A stretch of DNA of 64,000 bases from Parasitella parasitica NRRL 2501 (taxonomy: Eukaryota; Fungi; Mucoromycota). The position numbers and the translations under genes are program-made. Below, piece by piece: positions 11,464 to 51,416 of this stretch; the stretch's first letter is position 1, and every line of letters starts with the position of its first letter. Below the pieces are notes generated by a model, which worked only from the letters and a program-made list of their open reading frames with translations, ran no database searches and had not been told where the DNA came from. The stretch covers positions 1 to 64,000 of the forward strand of contig MU619249.1 in assembly GCA_025201805.1 (NCBI GenBank), given 5' to 3'.

Positions 11464-13455
11464 ATGGATGGACTTGTATGGAACGAAACACATACTACTA
11501 ATTCATTACACCAGTATTGTTATTGCGAACAAGATAGAAGCCTTCTTGATAAAGTTGTTCAATGTCGAGGTGAGTATTAATATCTAAATTGAAATGACGA
11601 TTTTAAGTATCTGTTTGTATGTAGGGTGCAAAAATTGGTTTCATACAAAATGCACATCGATTAAGGATCCTCCAACTACATTATTTGTAGTAAATTACCA
11701 ATTTGAATGCCACAACTGTAATGAATTGAATGTAGAGATATTTGAAAGAACTGCTGCAGGTTGGAAAGAAGTTTGTACAGCTAGCTTAGCAAATTTAGCG
11801 TTGGAAGCTATTTTACTCGACATTGGAACATACAGCAAGGAATTGTTAGAGAGCAAGAATGAATTATTGATGGAAAAATGGCAACCAGAGAAGTACTATT
11901 TCAACAAGAAAGACCTGGTTACTTTTTTAGACAAGCATTGGGACAGTATATGCACAGAAAGGTCGAGAACTCCTACGTGGTAAGTATATTTTGTTGCATA
12001 AAATTCAATCGTATTTATATATAGGTAGGTGGGCTACTTTAGGAAGTTGTTTATACTCGTCGAAGGATATGTTTATCGCAAGAAATGAAAATGAAAGATC
12101 TGCAACGTCAGACTTCCGATTAGCAGACTCGAATTTATGGCACATCCGACCACACCCAGCATCATCATCATTAGCAGCAGAAGGGGAGCCATCATCAGCT
12201 CGAATGTCAAATAGACTCAATGAGATTTCACCAGAAGCAAATAGATTATTGACATCGAACACACCTTCACCCAGATCATCCTCACCAGTGCCATTAACAC
12301 CCAACACTGTGCCTGCTGTATTTCCTCAAGGAACATCAGCTAATACAGATCATCCATTTAATCGATTTGGATTTAAATATAGTCCTTGCGAATCTTCAAT
12401 CTTACCGTTGGTAGCTTATCAACAGTCTGAAAATAGTTTAGGTGGATGTACCATCAGCATTCCAGACAAAAGTTCATATGTGTCTGTTACTAAGGACGGC
12501 TTAACGGTAACAACAGATAAAGGGTTTCGCATGTGTAGAGCCAACGTAGGAGTGAAGGAAGGAAATTGGTTTTGGGAGGCTAAAATTCAAAATGCAGCAG
12601 GGCCAGCCAGCAATGGAGCTCATGTTCGTCTTGGTTTTGCCAGAAGAGAAGGTATTTGGATGCTTGTAGATTACATTGAACGCATAATAACCCTATATTT
12701 ATACGCGCAAAGCATGTCTTAACGCACCAGTTGGATATGATGCTTATGGATATGCCTATCGAGATAAAACTGGCGATAAAATGTTTTGCTCTCGGCCTGA
12801 AAAATACGGCGAGCCATTTCAATCCGGGGATGTAATTGGACTTTACATCTCTATTCCAGCTAAAAACAAGGCAAAATTCCAAAGCGCTCTAAGAAGACGT
12901 ATACCCATTGCTTATAAAGAACGTTTCTGGTTTGAAGAAAAGGACTATAGACCCAGTAAAGAAATGGAGGCTCTAGCTGATCCTTATAGAAAGGACAAAG
13001 ACAATGACTACGAATCCAAGAAGCTGGAGGGATCCTTTATAACAGTCTACAAGAATGGCGTAAATCAAGGAGTCATGTTTACAGATTTGATTGATTTCGA
13101 GGATTTCGGTCGTTTGCCAGAGACGATCTTAGCAAAGAGAGCCAAAAAGAAGAGAAAACAATCCAAAAAAGATCACGGTAGCAGCATGCCCAGAGATGAC
13201 TTTGATAGTGTTACGCAGCATTGGACTGACGACCCTCCAGTTGAAGACGATGGTACACTAGGCTATTATCCAGCTGTCAGCGTTTTCAAAGGGGGTGTTG
13301 TCAACTGCAATTTCGGACCCAATTTTCAGCATCCACCGATAGATCAGAAAGATTGGAAACCATTAAGTCAAAGATACAATGATTACATGGTAGAAGAATG
13401 TGTTTGGGACCTAGTTGACGAGGTTTCTAGATCATTTAAATACAAAAAAAATTGA
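11464..13455 (+). CDS. ASH2: Set1/COMPASS subunit Ash2/Bre2 (PHD-like Zn finger, winged helix, SPRY); multi-exon
   Basis: YCYC...QCRGCKNWFH, YQFECHNC and TPTWWATLGSCLY; SPRY motifs KGFRMCRANVGV, VRLGFARRE, PVGYDAYGYAYRD and YYPAVSVF. GT-AG introns. Start ATG inferred at 11464. Confidence 0.88.
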
Positions 13456-33852: not shown

Positions 33853-33862
33853 NNNNNNNNNN
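33853..33862. other. Assembly gap (10 N)
   Basis: N run next to a homopolymer. Confidence 0.99.
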
Positions 33863-38852: not shown

Positions 38853-39076
38853 ATTGAACTACCGTTTTTTTTTTGATCCGCAGTTTAGAAATCACAATTT
38901 CAGGAACACCAAATGTGTATAATTTAGCATTGTTGTACAATCCATAAAAATAAGCATTCTAATCTGATGAAAACTGCGAACAAAAAAAAAAAAAAAGACT
39001 ATATAAAGATAGGCGATTTTCATTAAATCATTTCTTCCCTCAAATACTCGAGTTTTTTTCTTAATAAAAAAAAAAA

Positions 39077-42000
39077 ATGACTACATCAACACCACCATCT
39101 TCAATTGCTACTGCTATTGCTACTCGAAAGAGCACCCGAATTTCCATGTCTCAAGACAATATGATGAAAAAGGTATGTGATCCTCTTTCAAAACGAGGCA
39201 TGTGATAATTATATATTGACTGTTAACAAACTAATATGAAAAAGATTACTAAGAAAACCAACAAAGCCAAAAAAATCAGTAAAAATATCAAGAAAGTCGT
39301 GGGTCCTTCCAATGATCGTGTCAAAATTCAAATCAAGGGGATCCGTGATTTTAAAAAAAAATTAGTGCGTACTGGGGTTAGGGATTTAAGATATTTGATA
39401 ATTTAACACAACATATACTACAGGATTTGACCATGTATCTGGTTAGCCGTGAAGGGTATACATATGATACTTGGGTGATCGAAAGTGCAATTGCAAATCT
39501 TGATGTTGTAGTAGCTTATCAACAAAAGGTTCATGCGGAATCTGGCTATTCTATTGTTGAATCTGATAACATCAATATCAATAAGTCAAATCCATTCGAG
39601 AATCGAGAGCAAGAGACTGATTTAAGCAGTAAAAGGTTATCTCGCACTTCGAAAACTCGAGCAGTCATGGCATTGAGGCAACCTGATTTTATGGATGAAG
39701 ATGATCAGCATGACTTTCGGGGTAAAAAGCGCAAATCTGCCGCTGACAAGGATGTGCCGTCTGCTACTGTTTCTGCCAATGGTGAAAAGAAACGTTCTCA
39801 GGTCAAAGGGGCTGGAAGAAAAACCAAGGCTCAGGCTTTAATAGAGAAGCAATTGCAAGATCGATTGGAAAGGAAGAGGGATAGAGAGAATAGAGATGGT
39901 GAATCTATAATTCGATCCATGGATCATGTTGAGGGAAAAGATTGCTGCTTGAAATGTGCTTCTAGCACCTATCGTCGATTGCTGGAAAAGGGTGATTTGG
40001 AGGGATTCAAAAGGTGCTTTGAAGATGTTCGTAACATTCCTAGCCATTCTCAAGAAGATGCACCGAACGGCCTTAGTTTGATTCCTTACGCCATTATTCT
40101 GGAGAAGTTCGATTTTGCTGAATTCGCAACCAAGTTTAAACCTGCTTCCGATGACCTCCGCCCTGAAGTTCCTACCAAGTATGTTGTTTATGATGACAAT
40201 ACTGGTCATAACAGAGGGGGAGGGTTTTATGGCAACCGTAACTTTAGGTATGTAAAATTACATAGGGAAAATGATGCAAATTAGAATCGCAAAATTGATT
40301 AGACCGATATGCATAGACAAGTTCAGGAATCTAGAGGAAACCGCTTGGGTAATTCAGCATTTTACGGAAAGAGCGCTGGTTCTTTGCCTAGAAAAACTTA
40401 TATGAATGTTGAAGATATGATGGAGCAAGCTGGTATCAGCACTTACATGCCTTTTATCAATAAGGATATTTTCAAGAAGAATGAGGTTATCAATAACTTT
40501 TTGAATATTGAGGAAACTGGGTCAGTCAAAGTTTATTTTGTGGTCGCCTCTGGGAGTAGAACATTAGCTAGCAAATTGCTTGATCATAATATTGAATCTT
40601 CTGGTCGAAACACTTTTAATCACCTTCATCAAGAAGTCCTCAAGGTATGGGGGGGGAGGTTATGTTGTGTGTCGAGATTAATGTTGCTAAACAACATTAC
40701 ATTATAGTTGGATGGTACTCAAGCGCTGACTAGCTACAGAAGACCTCAAATACTCAAGATGGCATCCGATGCTTGCAATATAACGCCGTATCATTGTGCC
40801 GCTATTCATTGCTCTGCTACGTATCTTGCTGAATTTTTTGAAGCTCTTGATCAAGCAGAACGCCTACAAACAGACACGTATGGTCGAAATGTCGCTTTCT
40901 TTGCTGCTGTCAGCGATACCACAGATTGTCTTGAATTCCTCATTTCCAAGCATTTTAACGTAACCATGCATGACAAATTTAAAATGACGCCTCTTATACA
41001 GGCTGCTCGTTACGGAAAAAGTGCCAATGTACAAGTCTTGATCAACCACCAGAAAGGCGATGAAGTCGAAACACCCACGGCCATCTTCCAATCCATGCTA
41101 CGTAATAGAAGAACTGCTCTACATTATGCTGCTTACTTTGGCCACGCGGAAACTTGTAAAGTTCTGATCCAGAACAATTGCCCGGTTGATGTAATCGAGA
41201 ACCTTGACAAACAAACGCCATTACACTATGCCGCCAAGAATGGTTATTTGGATTGTGTTTATGTGCTCGTTGAAGAAGGCCATGCAAATCCTGAAAAGAG
41301 CGACAAATTCGGGAGAAATCCTTTACATTTAGCTTGTATCTATGGCCACATTGAAATTGTCTACTATCTCTTGTCTATCGGTGTCGATGCTGATGCTCCT
41401 GATAGTTCCCAAAACTACCCAACCCATTATGCTGCTGCTTATGGCTATATGGACATCTTGCACCTTCTAATTAAATATGGATCAGCTAATCCTGCTTTGC
41501 CAAATGTGTGGACGAGCACTCCTTGTTCAGTTGCTAATATGAAGGGGCATGTTGCCATTGTCAAGTATCTTCTCCGGTTGCCTGGGAATCTAATTGACGT
41601 CAACTTCAAGGACCAAGAGGGTAGTATCATGCTTCAACGCACTATTGATGAATCAGTCGCTTCAAATATGGACATGGAATTGAACCTAAATAAAGCAAAA
41701 CTACTGCTTTCAATGAATGCGGATGTGAATAGCAAAAATATTGAAGGTATGATATCTCATTATAACAAACTATACAATTTATTTACTCTTTTACAATATC
41801 AGGCTCTACTTCTCTTCATTGTTTAGCTGCAAATACCACATATATCAGATTACTTCCAAAGGGCTATAGGTCTATCTACCCCGAGAAAAAACAAGGCTAT
41901 GGCTATCATGCTATGCGCAGTGCCCAAAGCCATCCAAAAGATGATATGGATGGTGTCAAGTATCAACTGGATATGGCCAAGCTATTGATTGATTACGGGG

Positions 42001-45000
42001 CTGATTTGGATGCTAAAAATCATAAAAACGAAACGCCTCTCAGCACTGCAATGCGCAACAAGAACCATTCTCTTGTTGCAACCTTGATTAAAGCAGGTTC
42101 AAAATTTTGGCTCGATACAGATGAAGAAGGCAACAATTTTTTTCATTATTTTGCCGCGCTAGCAGCTCGTGTCAACTCTATGCGTCCTCATGGCTTTGTA
42201 GAAAATGAAATGAAGAGACAAAGATTTGTTGATGCTATCGAAAACATCTGGCAAGCTGTTCAAACTGTAGTTGAAGAGAAGAAGCTTGCTTTTGAAGATA
42301 TTGTAAGTTGTAGCATGTATTAAGCCGTTAATCAGTAATCTAAAAATAATGATGGTTTTGACAGGTCAATAAGCCCAACGATAAAGGATATCCCTTCTTT
42401 GTCTGGGGCGTTTGCAACGCGATTTCTTGTGAAAAGGCCTTGATGATATCTGAAAAGAGACTGGTTTCTTGCGCACTTGCATCAAAGAACAAGAACAGTG
42501 GTTCGTTTGGATATTATTCTTCAAATAATAATATTACTTGGGTCCCAAGCCTCAGGATTGATGAACATAACGAAGTTATGGATTTCGATTTTCGCTTTGA
42601 CTTTGCATTTTTTGTAGGTTTATTTTGCATTTATATATCATTGTTATACGTGCTCATCGAAAATCCAGATTAATTGTATGCAAAAGCTCTTGTCTATTAG
42701 CAAGTCCAATCTAGACCAGCAAGTTGTGCTTCCAAAGGACTTCAAAAAGGAAAAGCCAGATGCAAAGAGAGCCGAATATCCAACATCGACGGGCTACAGC
42801 GCACTTCATTTCGGTAATGTTTTGAGCCTCAAAATCCAATGAACTTTTTATTAACGCTCTCCATACAAAGCTTGCCAAACTCAATGCACCGATTTGATTG
42901 AATTTGTACTGTATCATGGGGCTTCTCCTAATGCAAGAGCCACAATAGACGATTGGCATGGTGATACACCAATGTTGATGGCCTGTCATATCAAACAAGA
43001 CCAGAATCAAGAACTTCCTGACAAAAGTCTTGAGACTATGGAAAAACTGAGCAAGAAGTTTACCATTATCAAGCCTGATTTTGAAATGATGCTCCACGAA
43101 ACCATACAACTTTTATTGAGGTATAGGGCGTGTCCTTTCATTGTCAATGCAGACAAGATCTCTCCTTTGTTCAAAATTGCATCTAGCCTAAATGCACCCA
43201 TTGTGAAACTCATGTGCGACGCCACGCCATCGTATGGAACTGATATCAACATCAAGAACGAAAGAAACAAAAATGTATTCATTGTTGCTTTGGATCCTAT
43301 CATTAACAGCATTGAAGCAAAGAAGAAGGCTGATATTTCTGTAGTTCAATCTCTTTTGCTGAAGAATGCAGATCCGAATACTCTGTATGATGATGGAGAC
43401 ACTGCATTTATTAAAGCAGTTAAAACATCCCATCTTCCTTTGGTCAGTGCTTTTCTGGGGAACTCTGTGTTTCCAATTGACCACAATTGTCAAAACAAGA
43501 GTAAGTAGAAACCCATCCAGCTAGGTGAAATAGCGCACTCACAAACACCATGTATTAGATCACCAAACCGCTCTGAGTATTGCTTGTGAGTTGAACGACA
43601 AGGATATTCTGGCAACCTATTTAGCATACCTGAAGGACAAGACGGTGTCTGTCAAAGCAACCATCAATACTTTCGATTCTAAAGGGTGCACGGCTCTTTC
43701 TTACACTTGCAAGAATGGAAATGCCGCAGCCATTACTGCTCTATTGCACAATCTAGGCGCCGATCCCAACTTGTACAAGTCTCAGCACGCTCCCCTTTGT
43801 GAAGCTGTAAAAAGTGGCGACATTGAGTCTGTAAAGAGTCTCCTGGATTATGGCGTTGAGCTGAATCAGTACGATGAAAACCGCAACACTCCCTTACACA
43901 ATGCTGTGCTTGTAGAAAAGCATCGAATTGTAGATCTTCTGCTCGCGCACTCTGCTGATTGCCATCTTGTCAATGCTAAACAACAAACGCCACTTCATTT
44001 AGCTGTCGATGTAGCCAAGAAGCAGACCAACCGTTCTTTCCGAGTTGAACGAAGCTTGATCAGAATGGGTGCAGACATCAATGCCATTGACTTCTTGGGT
44101 AAGTATAGTTGGTAGCGTATCTTCTCAACAAGCGAATCTCTGACTCTTGCCCACAGATCGTACTCCACTTCATTATGTGTTTGTCGAGAGCAACACGATT
44201 CCTCTTACTCGTGATACAACCCTTTTGCAAAAAAAAGTCAAGCTGATCTGTCAGGAAATTCAAGAAGAAAAGGACAAGCAAGACAGCTTGGCCTCTTATG
44301 CCTCTCAGTTTGATCTCAATGAACACCCAAGTAATCACAGCATGGCTCAGCTTAATACTTGGTTGAAAGATGCAAAATTGATCCAAATCAACCACCAGTG
44401 CAAAGAGAAAAAGAGATCAGACGGTACAGACCAGGAATTACAAATGACAAATCAAGAAAAGGATAAGATCAGAGCATATCATACTTATGAATGGGAAACA
44501 GAGGCCGGAATACCAGACCGTTTTGACCCTATCGATATCTTCAAGTTCCTTTCATCGTATGAAGATCTGAAGTATGATCAAATGGATCAATTTGGCAGAA
44601 CACCACTTCATTACGCTGCCTGTGTCGGCGCTTTTAGTTGCTCTACCTTATTGATTGCAAAAGGGATTGATATGAATGCAGTAGATAGTGACAAAGTAGG
44701 TAATCAACTTGCAGCTAGTATATAGCTTCATTAACTTTGTTTTACCGGATTATAGAATAATGCGCTGAAACTAGCTTTGCGCAACAACTATATAGATTAT
44801 TCTGTCATGCTGTACAATCTCGGTGCATCTGTCAAAATAAACATGACTTTGAGGAATGGATCGACAATCTCTACTTTAGGTTACAGTCTGTCAAAATCAC
44901 TGATCAATATTTCTTACTTGATTATGGAAAACGGGTGTCTTCTGATTGGTAATGCTATGCTTCTTGACTTGTAATGTAATACTAATCAGCCTTTGATAGA

Positions 45001-48000
45001 ATCTATAAGAGATGCTTTACAAAACGGCAAATTCCAAATGGCAGAGCTATTATTGAATTCTATTGACGACAAGATGCTGTGTGAATCAACCACTGATTCA
45101 GGTCTAAATATGTGGCATATTCTCGCTGACTTCAAGCCGTTCGCTAGAGACATATGGCAAGACTACATTGATGAATTCGTCTCTAGAGTCAAGAATGCAA
45201 ACCCTCCCTTTATCAAGGACAACTATAATAGAACGCCTTTGCATTACGCTGCCAAGCATGGACAAGACTTGCTTCTCCAAAGATTCATTCAAATTAATGA
45301 TATTGGTCTCAATGTCAATGACGTGGAAGGAAAATCAGAGCTTGATTATGCAGTTGAAGCTTGTCAAATTGATTGTGTGAAGGTTCTTACATACATACAG
45401 TCAGATCTTCGATGGCCTGTATTAACTTGACCACTGTTTTCATGTAGATTCTTTTGGATGCAGGCGCCAGTGTCATCAAATGTCTCACATTGCCAAGAAG
45501 CCATAAATCGATACTCTTACAAGCTGTGGAGAAACAAGAATACGATATCGCTAAATTACTTCTGGATCAAACTGCACTGACTGACGACGGAGACAGTGCA
45601 AATGGAAGGCCAACCTGCATCATGATGGCTTGCCAACAAAAGGACCTCAAGATGCTGCAACTTCTTGTCGATTATCGTGCTAATCCAAATACCCCTTGTT
45701 ATATTGAACGTCTGGGTAAACACGGAAAGGCTTATCAAGTGCTTGTACATCCTATTTTCATTGCATCTCAACTATCAGATGAACGTTTTTTGGAGGTTTG
45801 TAGTTTTCATGCTTTAATTTGGGTATTACTCAACCTTTTTTTTTTTTTTTTTTNNNNNNNNNNGATATAGACTCTCTTGAAGGCTGGTGCAGACCCGAAT
45901 GTGTATGGACCTACATCAGAGCCAGAAAAAGGACAATCATGCTTCATGTATAATGTCGCTCTCAAGCACACTAAGCACCAGGAGGTAATAAAATGCCATC
46001 ATTAATTGACAAGGCAAACACATTCTAAACCCTCTTCTTTTATTGGTTTTAGATGCTACTAAAATACAATGTTGATTTGAACAGTGTCGATCCTACTACA
46101 AAACGATCCATCTTTTACCAGTTTTTCTTTGACATCATGGCCACCCAATCTTCCAACTATATCCGTCAAATGTCTCCAGACCTTGGTTTTGATACGGTCA
46201 TCTACGAAAAGATGCTTCAAATGACACTAAATGGTTCGCAAGTGAATCATGTTGATTCTTTCACAAATATGACACCTCTAGAATTTGCAATTCGCGACAA
46301 GAAGCCTCTGCTAGTAAATGTAAGTTCGTTCATTTATATGTACATACATCCAACATTAAACTGACATAACACAAAGCGTCTTTTATCGTTTGGAGCCAAC
46401 CCCAATATTGAAAGTTGCGCCAGTTCAAAAAATACATCTTTTGCACATGTTGCAAATCCTCGAGGCATCAAATTACCTGGCATCTTGCATGCAATTATGC
46501 AAAACAACACAGAAATTTTGGCTCTTATTTTCAGCCAGACCAAACATGCAATCAACATAGAATGGCAAGATGATGAAGGCAACAATATTCTGTCATTCAC
46601 AGCAGGCACAATTAGCGGTTATTCTCATTGCAATAGTATGATTATGGATCAGGTTTTTGGTCAAATGTCAAAAACTATCTTCGAGAAGTTACTACGCTTA
46701 AAGAATTTTCAAGGTGAAAAGCCTAAATTCGCTTGTATTAAATACATTGTTATTTACTGTCTATTGATTTAGGAATATCGCCCATTCTTTATGCTTACCA
46801 TAGACAAGACAAGACATTGTACAATATGTTGGTCACAAAGGATAATTCTGCTGCTGTTTATGCCCAGAAGAACTATAAAAAAGAGGTTTTCCCTCAGGGT
46901 AGCAGCTGCTCACCTATGGATGTTGATCACATATCTCTTGTTCAAGTCGACCATGATGCACAAATCGAGCGTGAAAAGCTTCAAAGATTAAAAGATTTGG
47001 AAAAAGCTCAAGACCAGTCAACCAAAGCCACGAAAGAGGATGAAAAATTCAAGGTAGATCCTTATGCCAAGCTGAGCAAAGTTGGTACCCTTGCATTAAA
47101 CGAAGCCGGTCAGCCCTATGATATTATGTTAATGAAGGTCGAGTTGAACAGCTGGGGATCCAATACCGATACAACGTAAGCATATAGCACTAGTCATATT
47201 GATGCATCAACTAACACGACATTCATATCAGATTCTATAAAATGAGCATCATTCTCAATAAAGTGTTGAATATATATATATTATGGACTCGTTGGGGACC
47301 GTTTGGATCCGAAGGACAGCATCAAAAGACACCCTTCTTGACCAAAGAAGAAGCCGTTACTGAATTCAAATCCATCTTCAAGGCAAAAACTGGAAATGAG
47401 TGGGATAATCATGAAATATCCTTTGAAACAAAACCAAATCGCTATGAGCCCATGAAGATATCGCATCATCCAAAGGACACTATCATCAAAAACTTTGATT
47501 TCTTGGAAACTTCTGTGCGTTCCGAGCTGTCAAGTGAAATTTTTGATGCCATGAGGTTGGTTTGCAATTACACATACTTGTCAAGAGTCTATTCTGCCAC
47601 GGAAATCGATATGCCGCTTGGTCAAGTACCTCAGGAACGAATTGAAAGTGCCCGCGCCTTGTTGAATGAGACGTCTGAGCTGATTAAAACTTATAATGAA
47701 CTCAAGCAATGCTATACTGACAAGGCGAAAATACAAGAATCAAAAGGTATGCTTGTTGATTTTCATGGGAAGTTTGTCTTACATTAATCATTATACATGT
47801 AGTTTATGCATTCAAAATTGCCCGAAAGTGTGTTGCGTACTCTCGTCTTCTTCCCCGTTGTGGGGAGGAAAACAAGGCCATTCGATCCCTTTACAACCAC
47901 AGTAACAACGCCATTTCCATTGAACTCAGTAAGCTTGCTGATTTAAGCTATGTTGGATTTGCTGCCAATGTCATGTTGGCAGCAAAGCATCATATTGAAA

Positions 48001-49542
48001 CGACCAACCCACTTGACTATGCTTTCCGTTCGCTCGTTTGTTCTCTAAGGCCAATGTCTTACCTCAATGACTTGAATGAATATCAGCTAATCTCCAAGTA
48101 CATGAATTCTACTTCAAAGTCGAAGTTCGAACTAGTGCACCTTTTTGCAGTCAACCGAGCTAACGAAGAAGAAAGATTCCGTCCTTACGCAAAATCGGAC
48201 AATCGTAAATTGCTATGGCATGGATCTCGAATTGGTAACTTTATGGGTATCCTCAAGCAAGGCCTTCGAGTGACTCCTCGCACTACTAGCGCAAATGTAA
48301 GTTATATATGAATGCTTTTCGTACTAAATCATATATAAATACTAAAATACTGAATGCATTGATATTGAATAGGGAGCTTTATTGGGCTATGGTGTTTATT
48401 TTGCAGATACATTCTCAAAGTCTTTGAATTATTCTACAGAGGATTTTGGAAATCAAAGATCTGCTTACAAATTGATGCTGTTGTGTGAGGTTGCATTAGG
48501 CACTGAAAGGCTTAATGGCGATAAATCTGTACAATCTAATCAACCGTTTGACTCTAAAAAGGGTCAAGGAATGAATATCCCTGATCCTGAGAATGCTGTG
48601 TACGATGAAACCGGTGTAAGTATACATAATGTCAGCATTGAAAAACAAAACACCAACATGTTACATTAGCTTTGTATACCTATTGGTCCTTGTATTCCAT
48701 TCGTGCAACCTACGTCTACTGAAAATGGTTCGTTTACCCCTACAATGAACCTCAATTTTAATGAATGGGCAGTTTTCAACGAAGATCGCATCAAGATTCG
48801 TTATCTTTTGATCATAAAAGAAACAAGCAGCTGTTCCTTGTGCTTTACTCCTAATATCCAGAAGCGGTTATTAAAGCCCTATGTTGATCAGAAAATTAAA
48901 GACTATGACTATGGAGACTTTAATAGTTATGAAGCTGAAATTGTCAAGGCATATCTCACACATACAAATAAGACTCCTCAAGACATTTATATGGAGGATA
49001 TAGAGAATTTTATGGAGGCAAAAGGCTACAGTAAGTATTAAACTTACTACACGCATCTCTTAACTAAATGAATACGTATAATGATAGAAGATAAATGGAA
49101 TATACCATTAGATCTACAAAAAGACAGTAAAATATGTTGTGCGTGCGCAAAGAAAATCACTACAATGCTTTTAGATCGAAGAATATCATGCAATAGTTGT
49201 TCAGACCCAAATATTGGTAGGTTATCTGTGCTGCACATCCTAGATAAAAAAAAAAGCATCACCTCATCGTCTTATCGCATAGATAAACTTAATAAGAAGC
49301 CTAGATGTAAATATGGAAAAGATTGTCGAACTCAAGCCAACGTTACTCATGCTTCAAAATACAAGCATTGGTTTAAGAGAAACGTCGCCGATGATCCTAA
49401 TTTTATGGCAGACAGTAGTGAACTAGACGATGATGACTATAAACCCGAGAATAACGATAAAACAGATGATGAGAATGAAAATGAAGACGATGACCATATG
49501 GAAACAGATACCGAAGATTCAATGGAAATTGATGAAGATTAA
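39077..49542 (+). CDS. Giant ankyrin-repeat poly(ADP-ribose) polymerase (chromo-like, ANK array, WGR, PARP_reg, PARP catalytic, CHFR-like CRD, PBZ, acidic tail); more than 20 introns
   Basis: Consecutive same-strand exons flanked by GT-AG introns. Many TPLHYAA/TALHYAA ankyrin motifs, LWTRWGPFG..FKAKTGNEW, DMPLGQV, NPLDY, LLWHGS, GYGVYFAD..SKSLNY, MLLCEVALG, NEWAVF..IRYLL and CKYGKDCRTQANVTHASKYKH. Confidence 0.9.
45854..45863. other. Assembly gap (10 N) inside a PARP intron
   Basis: N run after poly(T), just before the acceptor GATATAG. Confidence 0.99.
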
Positions 49543-49792: not shown

Positions 49793-51416
49793 ATGTTCCC
49801 TCGTCAGCTACTTCGTTCACTGAAGACAAATTATGGTATGCAATGCCATAGCACAATAAAAGACCATACTTTTTCAGGGGAATTTCTCATACAAAATCCT
49901 TAATCAGGTGTGCTATCATATAGTTTGCCAATTACGAGATCTTTTCATATTTCGAGAGCCAGCCTAGTGAAAGCTGCTGATAAGCCCAAAGTCAATGGTA
50001 AATTTGAATAATAATTTACATTATACTGTCTAATATTTTTTTTTTCTTGAATCCAAAGACGTCTCCAAAACAAATGAGCATGACCACAGAGCAATCGGTA
50101 AAGCACAATCGTTGTTCATGATTCACCCCGTTAGCCCCGGCTCCATTTTCATGTTACCTCATGGTACTCGCATTGTACATAAACTTCAAGATTTTTTGAG
50201 GACAGAATATGCTAGATATGGTTATGATGAAGTGATGACACCTTTAATTTATAAAAAAGAATTGTGGGAGACAAGCGGCCATTGGCAAAACTACATGGAA
50301 GATATGTTTATGGTAAAGAGTGGACGTGAACAAGTATGCACTCACGAACATGACCATGATGGCGATCAATCAATTGACACAGAAGAAGGACTCTTTGGCT
50401 TAAAACCAATGAATTGCCCTGGACATTGTTTAATTTTTGACAGCACCCCTAAATCATACCGTGATCTACCAATTCGATTGGCCGATTTTAGCCCACTGCA
50501 CAGGTATGTCACCTAAGATATTCCTATTATAAGTTTTTTGACTTATTTTAATATAAGAAACGAAGCATCGGGTGCTTTGACAGGTTTAACCAGAGTGCGA
50601 AGGTTCCACCAGGACGATGCTCATATTTTTTGTGCTGAAAAGCAGATTGAAAATGAAATTACATCCTGCCTGTCCTTTGTTGATCGAGTATACAAAGCAT
50701 TTAAATTCCCTCACTACGATCTGACTCTTTCTACTCGCCCAGAATCACAGTATATTGGATCAATAGAAGAGTGGGATCATGCTGAGGAAGCACTAAAACA
50801 AGCCCTGAATAGCACAGGTCGTTCTTGGTCTGTCAAGGAAGGCGATGGCGCATTTTATGGCCCTAAGATTGATATCATGGTCAAGGATTCCAGTGGTAAA
50901 TCTCATCAAACTGCAACAATTCAATTGGATTTTCAATTGCCTGGAAGATTTGGATTAAATTATGTTGACGAGAATGATGTATCGCAAACGCCTGTCATTG
51001 TACATCGTGCTATTCTTGGTTCCATCGAACGTATGATGGCAATTCTGATTGAACACACTGGTGGTAAATGGCCATTCTGGCTGAGTCCTCGTCAAGGTGT
51101 TGTCATTCCTGTTTCTACTCAATTTGCTGACTATGCCAAAATTGTGGCACAATCATTATCTTTGGGCCATAATCAAGAATCCAGCGCTTCTCATGATCAT
51201 TATTACGTGGATGTAGATTCTTCTCCTCGCGATAGACTCAACAAGATGATACGTCAAGCCCAACTTCAACAATACAACTTTATCTTTGTTGTTGGGCAAA
51301 AGGAAATGGATGAAGGGACTGTAAATGTAAGAACTCGCAAGGGTGAAGTTTTGGGCGCAATGAGTGTTGAACAAGTCCGTGAAATGTTTGCTTCCATGAC
51401 TAAGAAATTAGAGTAG
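49793..51416 (+). CDS. MST1: Mitochondrial threonyl-tRNA synthetase (no editing domain), multi-exon
   Basis: Presequence-like MFPRQLLRSLK, DHRAIG, LWETSGHW, LKPMNCPGHC, HRNEASGALTGLTRVRRFHQDDAH, GAFYGPKID and HRAILGSIER. Confidence 0.92.

Follow-up and report, generated by a model that had tools for sequence, protein, structure and literature searches.

Proteins that join ankyrin repeats to a PARP1-like core have been recognised for more than a decade. Citarelli 2010 (PMC2964712) placed them in Clade 1A, a group of the PARP1 clade with ankyrin repeats, a WGR domain, a PARP regulatory domain (PRD) and a catalytic domain, which occurs in Dictyostelium, fungi and Paramecium and was argued not to represent tankyrases. 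Perina 2014 (PMC4245714) used the term "Clade 1-ank" for ADPRT3, PME-5 and a Saprolegnia protein, and a 2026 preprint (10.64898/2026.07.25.740670) described versions of 2,648-2,995 amino acids (aa) from four Mucoromycota species, with CHROMO in two of them. As for the reading of poly(ADP-ribose) (PAR), PBZ "could not be found" in Fungi according to Perina 2014 (PMC4245714), no WWE or PBZ domain was identified in Fungi according to a 2026 review (PMC13720257), which regards signal reading as an open question, and the term PBZ is absent from the text of the 2026 preprint. Here we describe a gene at 39077-49542 on the forward strand of a 64,000-nucleotide (nt) stretch of DNA from Parasitella parasitica NRRL 2501 (contig MU619249.1, positions 1 to 64,000; hereafter, the window). 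We read its product as a giant PAR polymerase that belongs to the ankyrin-bearing branch of the PARP1 clade (Clade 1A / Clade 1-ank, of the PME-5 and ADPRT3 type) and carries a PAR-reader tail, and we give this reading a probability of roughly 70%. Family and structure searches were performed exon by exon, and full-length orthologues from databases served as proxies for the spliced protein.

The tail begins directly behind the catalytic domain and consists, in this order, of a CxxC pair, a helical stretch, a second CxxC pair, a PBZ finger and an acidic tail (Table 1). The frame at 49072-49539 matches PBZ/zf-CCHH (PF10283) with 29.8 bits in one scan and 32.8 bits in another, where the gathering score is 22.7. 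The published PBZ consensus, [K/R]xxCx[F/Y]GxxCxbbxxxxHxxx[F/Y]xH (PMC4030884), is matched at every position in the window, both aromatics included and with K2936 also in place, while the best match among solved structures is the PBZ of CHFR, including its CRTQ spacing. In the part upstream of the finger, the Cys-rich family zf-CRD (PF17979) was matched in seven of nine fungal orthologues, and its score exceeded the gathering score in the orthologues from Endogone (29.9 bits) and Rhizophlyctis (28.2 bits). The most informative relative is P0015 from Basidiobolus meristosporus, in which one exon encodes everything from PRD to PBZ. A search with its final 153 residues found the Cys-rich domain of human CHFR in PDB with an E value of 4.4e-12 over 125 residues. 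An AlphaFold2 model of the P0015 tail, built on an alignment of 25 fungal orthologues, reached a pLDDT of 90.2 and a pTM of 0.84, and Foldseek found 2XOC and 2XOY (E 2.7e-8, TMq 0.70) as its sole significant matches in PDB, both of them CHFR structures with bound ADP-ribose ligands. Eight zinc ligands (CCCC, then CCHH) are invariant in 26 sequences, and all of them are present in the window. As judged through these orthologues, the C-terminal module is CHFR-type in sequence and in predicted fold, in agreement with the sequence-only reading of this DNA, which had proposed such a module. In addition, a protein atlas search with residues 1748-1895 of P0159 returned CHFR/zf-CRD/PBZ clusters at 0.76-0.77, which we treat as a lead only.

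Similar to human CHFR (2XOC, 2XOY, 2XP0), the Parasitella protein combines a helical zinc scaffold with a PBZ finger of CRTQ-type spacing. However, of the Pfam zf-CRD model the fungal module covers only about two-thirds, at the C-terminal end, and CHFR possesses FHA and RING domains, whereas no FHA or RING family scored above threshold in any piece of the window or in any orthologue examined, and the module stands here behind a PARP catalytic domain rather than a RING. An identity as a CHFR orthologue or ubiquitin ligase was ruled out, since FHA and RING are absent, and a RING_ZNF598 match of 20.1 bits was rejected, being below its gathering score and in a frame piece outside the gene model. 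The tail is thus a borrowed CHFR-type module. Within its Cys-rich domain (CRD), a helix encoded at 48900-49000 of exon 22 (aa 2845-2878, beginning NSYEAEIVKAYLTHT) matched the first helix of the PARP1 and PARP2 catalytic domains weakly and without significance (E 0.14-0.7), and its counterpart in CHFR, as traced via the Basidiobolus orthologue, is the helix NSYESDILKNYL. Its likeness to the PARP1/PARP2 helix may reflect chance or a distant relation.

Relatives with the same large architecture are numerous. A search with the WGR/PRD exon yielded 870 proteins, and the best 150 of these 870 include 58 of at least 1,500 aa, in which WGR lies near residue 2,000-2,500. The C-terminal third of P0158, the closest orthologue (2,995 aa, also from Parasitella parasitica), retrieved 82 giant relatives, all of which have Ank, WGR, PARP_reg and PARP. 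These 82 include fungi (Umbelopsis, Endogone, Entomophthora, chytrids and numerous genera of Mucorales), animals (molluscs, cnidarians, echinoderms, rotifers and one sponge), ciliates (Paramecium), heteroloboseans (Naegleria/Willaertia) and oomycetes (Phytophthora), and "tankyrase-like" is a common annotation among such relatives. Zoopagomycota are among the fungal groups with relatives. In an unrooted tree of the WGR-PRD-catalytic region with 53 rows (32 fungal and 21 non-fungal), all 32 fungal proteins fell on one side of a branch with an SH-aLRT support of 99, and their order followed fungal taxonomy. Through its orthologues, the window is placed in the fungal group among ANK-type proteins, in a tree that holds none of the canonical PARP1/2/3; the shorter hits considered as an outgroup are themselves pieces of ANK-type proteins. 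On the sequence relationships in this tree, the gene is vertically descended within fungi.

The CRD-PBZ tail occurs only on the fungal side. All of the 32 fungal proteins extend 103-370 residues beyond the catalytic domain, and 25 of them carry the motif C-x5-C-x6-8-H-x5-H, in contrast to none of the 21 non-fungal proteins examined. In nineteen of these 21, only 0-36 residues follow the catalytic domain; the other two, both Phytophthora models, have 170 aa beyond the aligned region, without the PBZ motif. Four fungal models without the motif, P0160, P0162, P0005 and P0169 (from Cokeromyces, Sporodiniella, Pilobolus and Fennellomyces), have tails of 103-126 aa and look like gene models that lack the last one or two short exons. 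Exon 23 of the Parasitella gene has 42 codons and is flanked by introns at 49031-49087 and 49217-49282; in the chytrid Rhizophlyctis rosea, introns at 11647-11717 and 11847-11903 of L007 lie at the same protein positions. These shared positions indicate that the tail is an old fungal addition and its split gene structure ancient, rather than the product of a recent shuffle. As the tree has no outgroup, gain rather than loss of the tail is judged from its absence in all non-fungal members and not from the tree itself.

It could also be that the CRD-PBZ tail is a structural or otherwise specialised zinc module, which contacts nucleic acid or protein or stabilises the catalytic domain, so that the protein would be a writer only. 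Structurally, PBZ fingers do resemble single-stranded RNA-binding C3H1 fingers (PMC4030884), the PBZ score of several orthologues stays under the Pfam gathering score, the aromatic after the first Cys is replaced by N, D, K or L in four fungal members, and the motif is missing from seven of the 32 fungal models. Nevertheless, we consider this explanation improbable, given that the window fits the full consensus with both aromatics and scores above the gathering score, that the entire module shares homology, by sequence as well as by fold, with a CHFR domain crystallised with ADP-ribose ligands, and that none of the eight zinc ligands varies across fungi ranging from chytrids to Mucorales. A PAR reader behind the polymerase remains our preferred reading of the tail.

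The part of the protein preceding the tail is of a well-known kind. Similar to the described members of Clade 1A / Clade 1-ank (Dictyostelium ADPRT3, Caenorhabditis elegans PME-5 and the proteins of Paramecium, Saprolegnia and Rhizopus/Mucor), which have N-terminal ankyrins, WGR, PRD, an H-Y-E triad and 2,000-3,000 aa but no SAM domain, the Parasitella protein shows all of these features, and such proteins are the first matches of its WGR/PRD exon. Pfam families were found along the plus-strand stop-to-stop frames of 39068-49539 in the order ankyrin, WGR, PARP_reg, PARP and PBZ. The ankyrin arrays, with matches to Ank, Ank_2, Ank_3, Ank_4 and Ank_5 in nine open-frame pieces at 40708-45822, total approximately 1,700 residues, and in the orthologue alignment an ankyrin-like consensus extends over exons 15-17. 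WGR and PARP_reg were both matched within the piece 47215-47784. The PARP_reg match in the window covers the first half of the domain, and full-length matches were seen in orthologues. The catalytic family PF00644 was matched at 47760-48308 (E 7e-19) and 48373-48666 (E 9e-13). Among solved chains, the catalytic exons matched PARP2, PARP3 and PARP1 with E values of 1e-14 to 1e-16 and PARP4 weakly, and no tankyrase chain appeared at E<=1e-3. The alignments with PARP2 and PARP1 chains cover the motifs HGS, GIYFAD and YNEYIVY and so bring HGS, GxYFAD and NExxVF into register, and the triad aligns with the triad residues of PARP1 and PARP2. Its codons, those of H2661 (48219-48221), Y2695 (48397-48399) and E2799 (48763-48765), lie exactly where the sequence-only reading had put them, and that reading was also right about the order of ankyrin, WGR, PARP_reg and H-Y-E catalytic domains and about a PME-5 (Clade 1) rather than a true tankyrase type, as WGR and PRD are present, SAM is absent and the solved relatives are PARP2, PARP1 and PARP3.

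Nonetheless, a tankyrase-like role should be weighed, in which the protein would be a DNA-independent scaffold enzyme whose ankyrins capture substrate peptide motifs for telomere, spindle or proteasome functions, with vestigial WGR and regulatory domains and no part in the DNA-damage response. As in tankyrase 1/2 (Clade 4), a PAR-forming catalytic domain is preceded by long ankyrin arrays, and relatives are annotated as "tankyrase-like". The WGR signature reads W-G-P (WTRWGPFG, 47284-47310), with the Arg replaced; this Arg is not conserved in the fungal orthologues, whose consensus is WTRWGxxG. According to Perina 2014 (PMC4245714), moreover, nematodes have either Clade 1-ank proteins or true tankyrases in each other's place, a pattern suggestive of overlapping function. 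However, tankyrases have SAM and lack WGR and PRD, and the Parasitella protein is the reverse: no SAM domain was found by Pfam in any exon piece or examined orthologue, WGR and PRD are kept in all relatives, and the solved matches of the catalytic exons at E<=1e-3 come from PARP2, PARP1, PARP3 and PARP4 rather than tankyrase. As the only PARP found in the genome, the gene would also be the only candidate for damage-induced PAR, and PME-5 has a proposed DNA-damage role (PMC4245714). A purely tankyrase-like enzyme is therefore unlikely, and we retain the assignment to the ankyrin-bearing PARP1-clade lineage.

The stretch 39077-49542 is one gene, which is transcribed and spliced. An 8,935-nt contig from the single public run that contains this stretch covers 43701 to approximately 49460 at 100% identity; it skips 14 segments of 51-76 nt, all GT..AG, and is otherwise identical to the genome. 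After removal of these 14 introns, the frame is open over 1,660 codons to the stop at 49540-49542, and exons 10-24 are joined in frame across the boundary between the ankyrin and WGR parts. Exons 10-24 of the model were taken from these transcript joints and exons 1-9 were predicted, with the nine 5' introns placed by dynamic programming on codon usage and splice sites and exons 2-9 checked for colinearity against P0158. The model and P0158 are colinear over exons 2-24, at 64-95% identity per exon (65-91% for exons 2-9), and the junctions are offset by one or two residues, except for 11 residues where exon 7 ends. Upstream of 43701, the contig carries 4,033 nt where the model predicts 4,067 nt, which places the contig start about 34 nt past the ATG at 39077. 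Exon 1 has no homologue match, and the predicted start at this ATG is unconfirmed. At the other end, contig coverage stops before the last ~80 nt of the gene. The sequence-only reading had likewise joined the pieces into one gene, for which the in-frame contig and the colinearity with P0158 now speak, and its size estimate of 2,800-3,000 aa is slightly exceeded by the 3,016 aa of the model.

The assembly gap at 45854-45863 lies within intron 14; the contig skips 45794-45868, and a shift of this cut by 2 nt downstream yields GT..AG. As the flanking exons are joined in frame, the gap leaves the coding sequence unaffected. The contig is also unlikely to be a DNA retrocopy, because the assembly has no second PARP or WGR locus. 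Although a gap lies within the span, exons 1-9 have no read support and a contig spanning neighbouring genes would alone be no proof of one transcript, two or more genes or a misjoin, with the giant frame as a stitching artefact, are very improbable in view of one contig with 14 introns removed and an uninterrupted frame across the ankyrin-WGR boundary and the gap, the position of that gap in an intron, and dozens of independently annotated orthologues of 2,400-3,200 aa with the same order of parts.

Table 1. Coordinates of the ankyrin-type PARP gene and its parts in the window
Feature	Position	Strand	Remarks
Whole gene model	39077..49542	+	24 exons separated by 23 introns (47-87 nt each); 3,016 codons and a stop
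N-terminal region, aa 1-454	39077..40644	+	Lys/Arg-rich; CCLxC and ESRGNRxG motifs conserved
Ankyrin arrays, exons 5-17, aa 455-2215	40708..46713	+	Broken by non-repeat inserts
Intron 14	45796..45870	+	Holds assembly gap 45854-45863 behind a poly-T run
Linker, exon 18, aa 2217-2349	46773..47175	+	Ankyrin to WGR; acidic/basic coiled stretch
WGR domain	47230..47412	+	PF05406, E 1.1e-15
PARP regulatory (helical) domain	47521..48074	+	PF02877, E 4.3e-8 on first half; intron 47747-47802 splits the domain
PARP catalytic domain, exons 20-22	48075..48822	+	PF00644
CHFR-type Cys-rich domain, end of exon 22 and exon 23	48832..49216	+	C4 zinc site C2822, C2825, C2904, C2907
PBZ finger	49297..49368	+	C2939, C2945, H2953, H2959, with Y2941, G2942, Y2957
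Acidic low-complexity tail	49369..49539	+	Asp/Glu-rich; aligns with the P0158 C-terminus

The N-terminal region (aa 1-454) is conserved among the Mucorales orthologues, as seen in the alignments and their consensus, and no Pfam domain was found there in the scans of exon pieces. A degenerate chromo-like stretch, whose likeness was noted by eye only, runs across the predicted junction of exons 2 and 3 at approximately 39300-39540, and the orthologues from Endogone and Rhizophlyctis have a Pfam-positive chromodomain at the matching position. A chromodomain (PF00385) in the window was nevertheless rejected, with no match at E<=1 for 39245-39376 or 39424-39600 and with the cage Trp lost; Pfam gave no chromodomain match in the closest orthologues, P0158 and P0156, either. 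The linker encoded by exon 18 also has no Pfam domain and is conserved in the fungal orthologues.

Three further observations concern the sequence in and around the gene. The 66-nt intron at 49217-49282 is in frame and free of stops, so that the genomic open reading frame (ORF) 49072-49539 reads through it, and its removal is shown only by the transcript contig. A second 10-N assembly gap is present at 33853-33862, outside the PARP gene. Downstream, the plus-strand ORFs at 50112-51416 resemble, by eye, a class II threonyl-tRNA synthetase, and they are taken as a separate gene because the PARP transcript contig ends before them.

In the 32.8-Mb assembly, six-frame scans found this gene as the only match for the PARP catalytic, WGR and PBZ families, and the gene therefore probably carries all PAR writing and all PBZ-type reading of the genome. 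No PARG of either type was found in the assembly, a provisional result of an exon-by-exon draft scan that had no positive control for PF05028; Perina 2014 (PMC4245714) likewise reported no obvious PARG from Mucor or Rhizopus. One ARH-type ADP-ribosylglycohydrolase gene (G000:C54:1671-2859, minus strand) and one macrodomain locus (G000:C186:16433-16627, plus strand) were identified.

The combination of ankyrin, WGR, PRD and PARP domains, which the sequence-only reading did not recognise from characterised fungal proteins, is widespread and already described (PMC2964712, PMC4245714, 10.64898/2026.07.25.740670), in fungi since 2010; the fusion of a PAR writer with a PBZ reader, suggested there as well, is not new as such either, since PARPs with PBZ have been described from Entamoeba, Dictyostelium, Capsaspora and lancelet (Ahel 2008, as related in passages of PMC4245714 and PMC4030884). 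Those proteins have, as here, writer and PBZ reader in one chain, although in these passages, through which alone they were compared, they are not described as ankyrin-type, CRD-bearing or fungal. The Mucoromycota giants of the 2026 preprint belong to the same gene family, and the 2,995 aa of P0158 equal the upper size limit given in that preprint; what differs is that a CHFR-type CRD-PBZ was recognised here, and that the window has no Pfam chromodomain match. In a targeted search of the literature, no paper was found that connects PBZ to Mucorales, chytrids or Rhizopus. Judged by the literature open to search, the unreported part is the conserved CHFR-type CRD-PBZ tail of the fungal members, and the position of the gene as the sole PARP and PBZ locus of its genome is also new.

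Based on what is known of these families, the WGR-HD-ART cassette with its H-Y-E triad would act as an autoinhibited, allosterically switched PAR writer, and the ankyrin arrays would dock partners or substrates. The PBZ on its CHFR-like zinc scaffold may bind internal ADP-ribose-ADP-ribose junctions of PAR, which could be the product of the enzyme itself or PAR on neighbouring proteins. A PBZ attached to the writer might then keep or concentrate the enzyme at sites that already carry PAR (feed-forward retention), and the ARH-type hydrolase and the macrodomain protein would be candidate erasers. The idea of a self-amplifying PARylation system, put forward in the sequence-only reading, is compatible with such an architecture.

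Several points weigh against our reading. For the fungal members, catalysis, binding of PAR and feed-forward retention are deductions from the families to which the domains belong. The W-G-P signature means that activation by DNA breaks, as in PARP1-3, may not apply, and the trigger may differ. On exon 22 alone, zf-CRD scores 18.1 bits, below its gathering score of 26.3, which we attribute to the split of the module over three exons; the closest orthologue, P0158, is below threshold for both zf-CRD and PBZ, and the seven fungal models without a PBZ motif count here too. All transcript support derives from a single run in a single study, and the label of this run as RNA is a guess. The status as sole PARP and the absence of PARG are provisional, as they depend on exon-by-exon six-frame scans of a 450-contig assembly.

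A more far-reaching proposal is that the CRD-PBZ is a working PAR reader and the first of the PBZ type in Fungi, which was fused before the split of chytrids and Mucoromycota and apparently lost with the gene in Dikarya, so that one polypeptide would constitute the whole PAR writer and PBZ reader of a genome without PARG. We advance this only tentatively and hold it to be somewhat less probable than its negation. If it is true, the Parasitella gene would offer a minimal system that shows PAR signalling through self-retention of a writer-reader, with ARH and macrodomain proteins as erasers.

Published domain surveys of these giant proteins overlooked the small terminal module, which lies on short last exons and, in several species, scores just under default thresholds. 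A well-conserved CHFR-type PBZ is present in this gene and in its orthologues from Mucorales, Umbelopsis, Endogone, Basidiobolus and chytrids, and it provides a concrete candidate reader for the early-diverging fungi, among them the mucormycosis-causing Mucorales. For these fungi, the ankyrin-type PARP would also be the one gene without which no PAR is expected.

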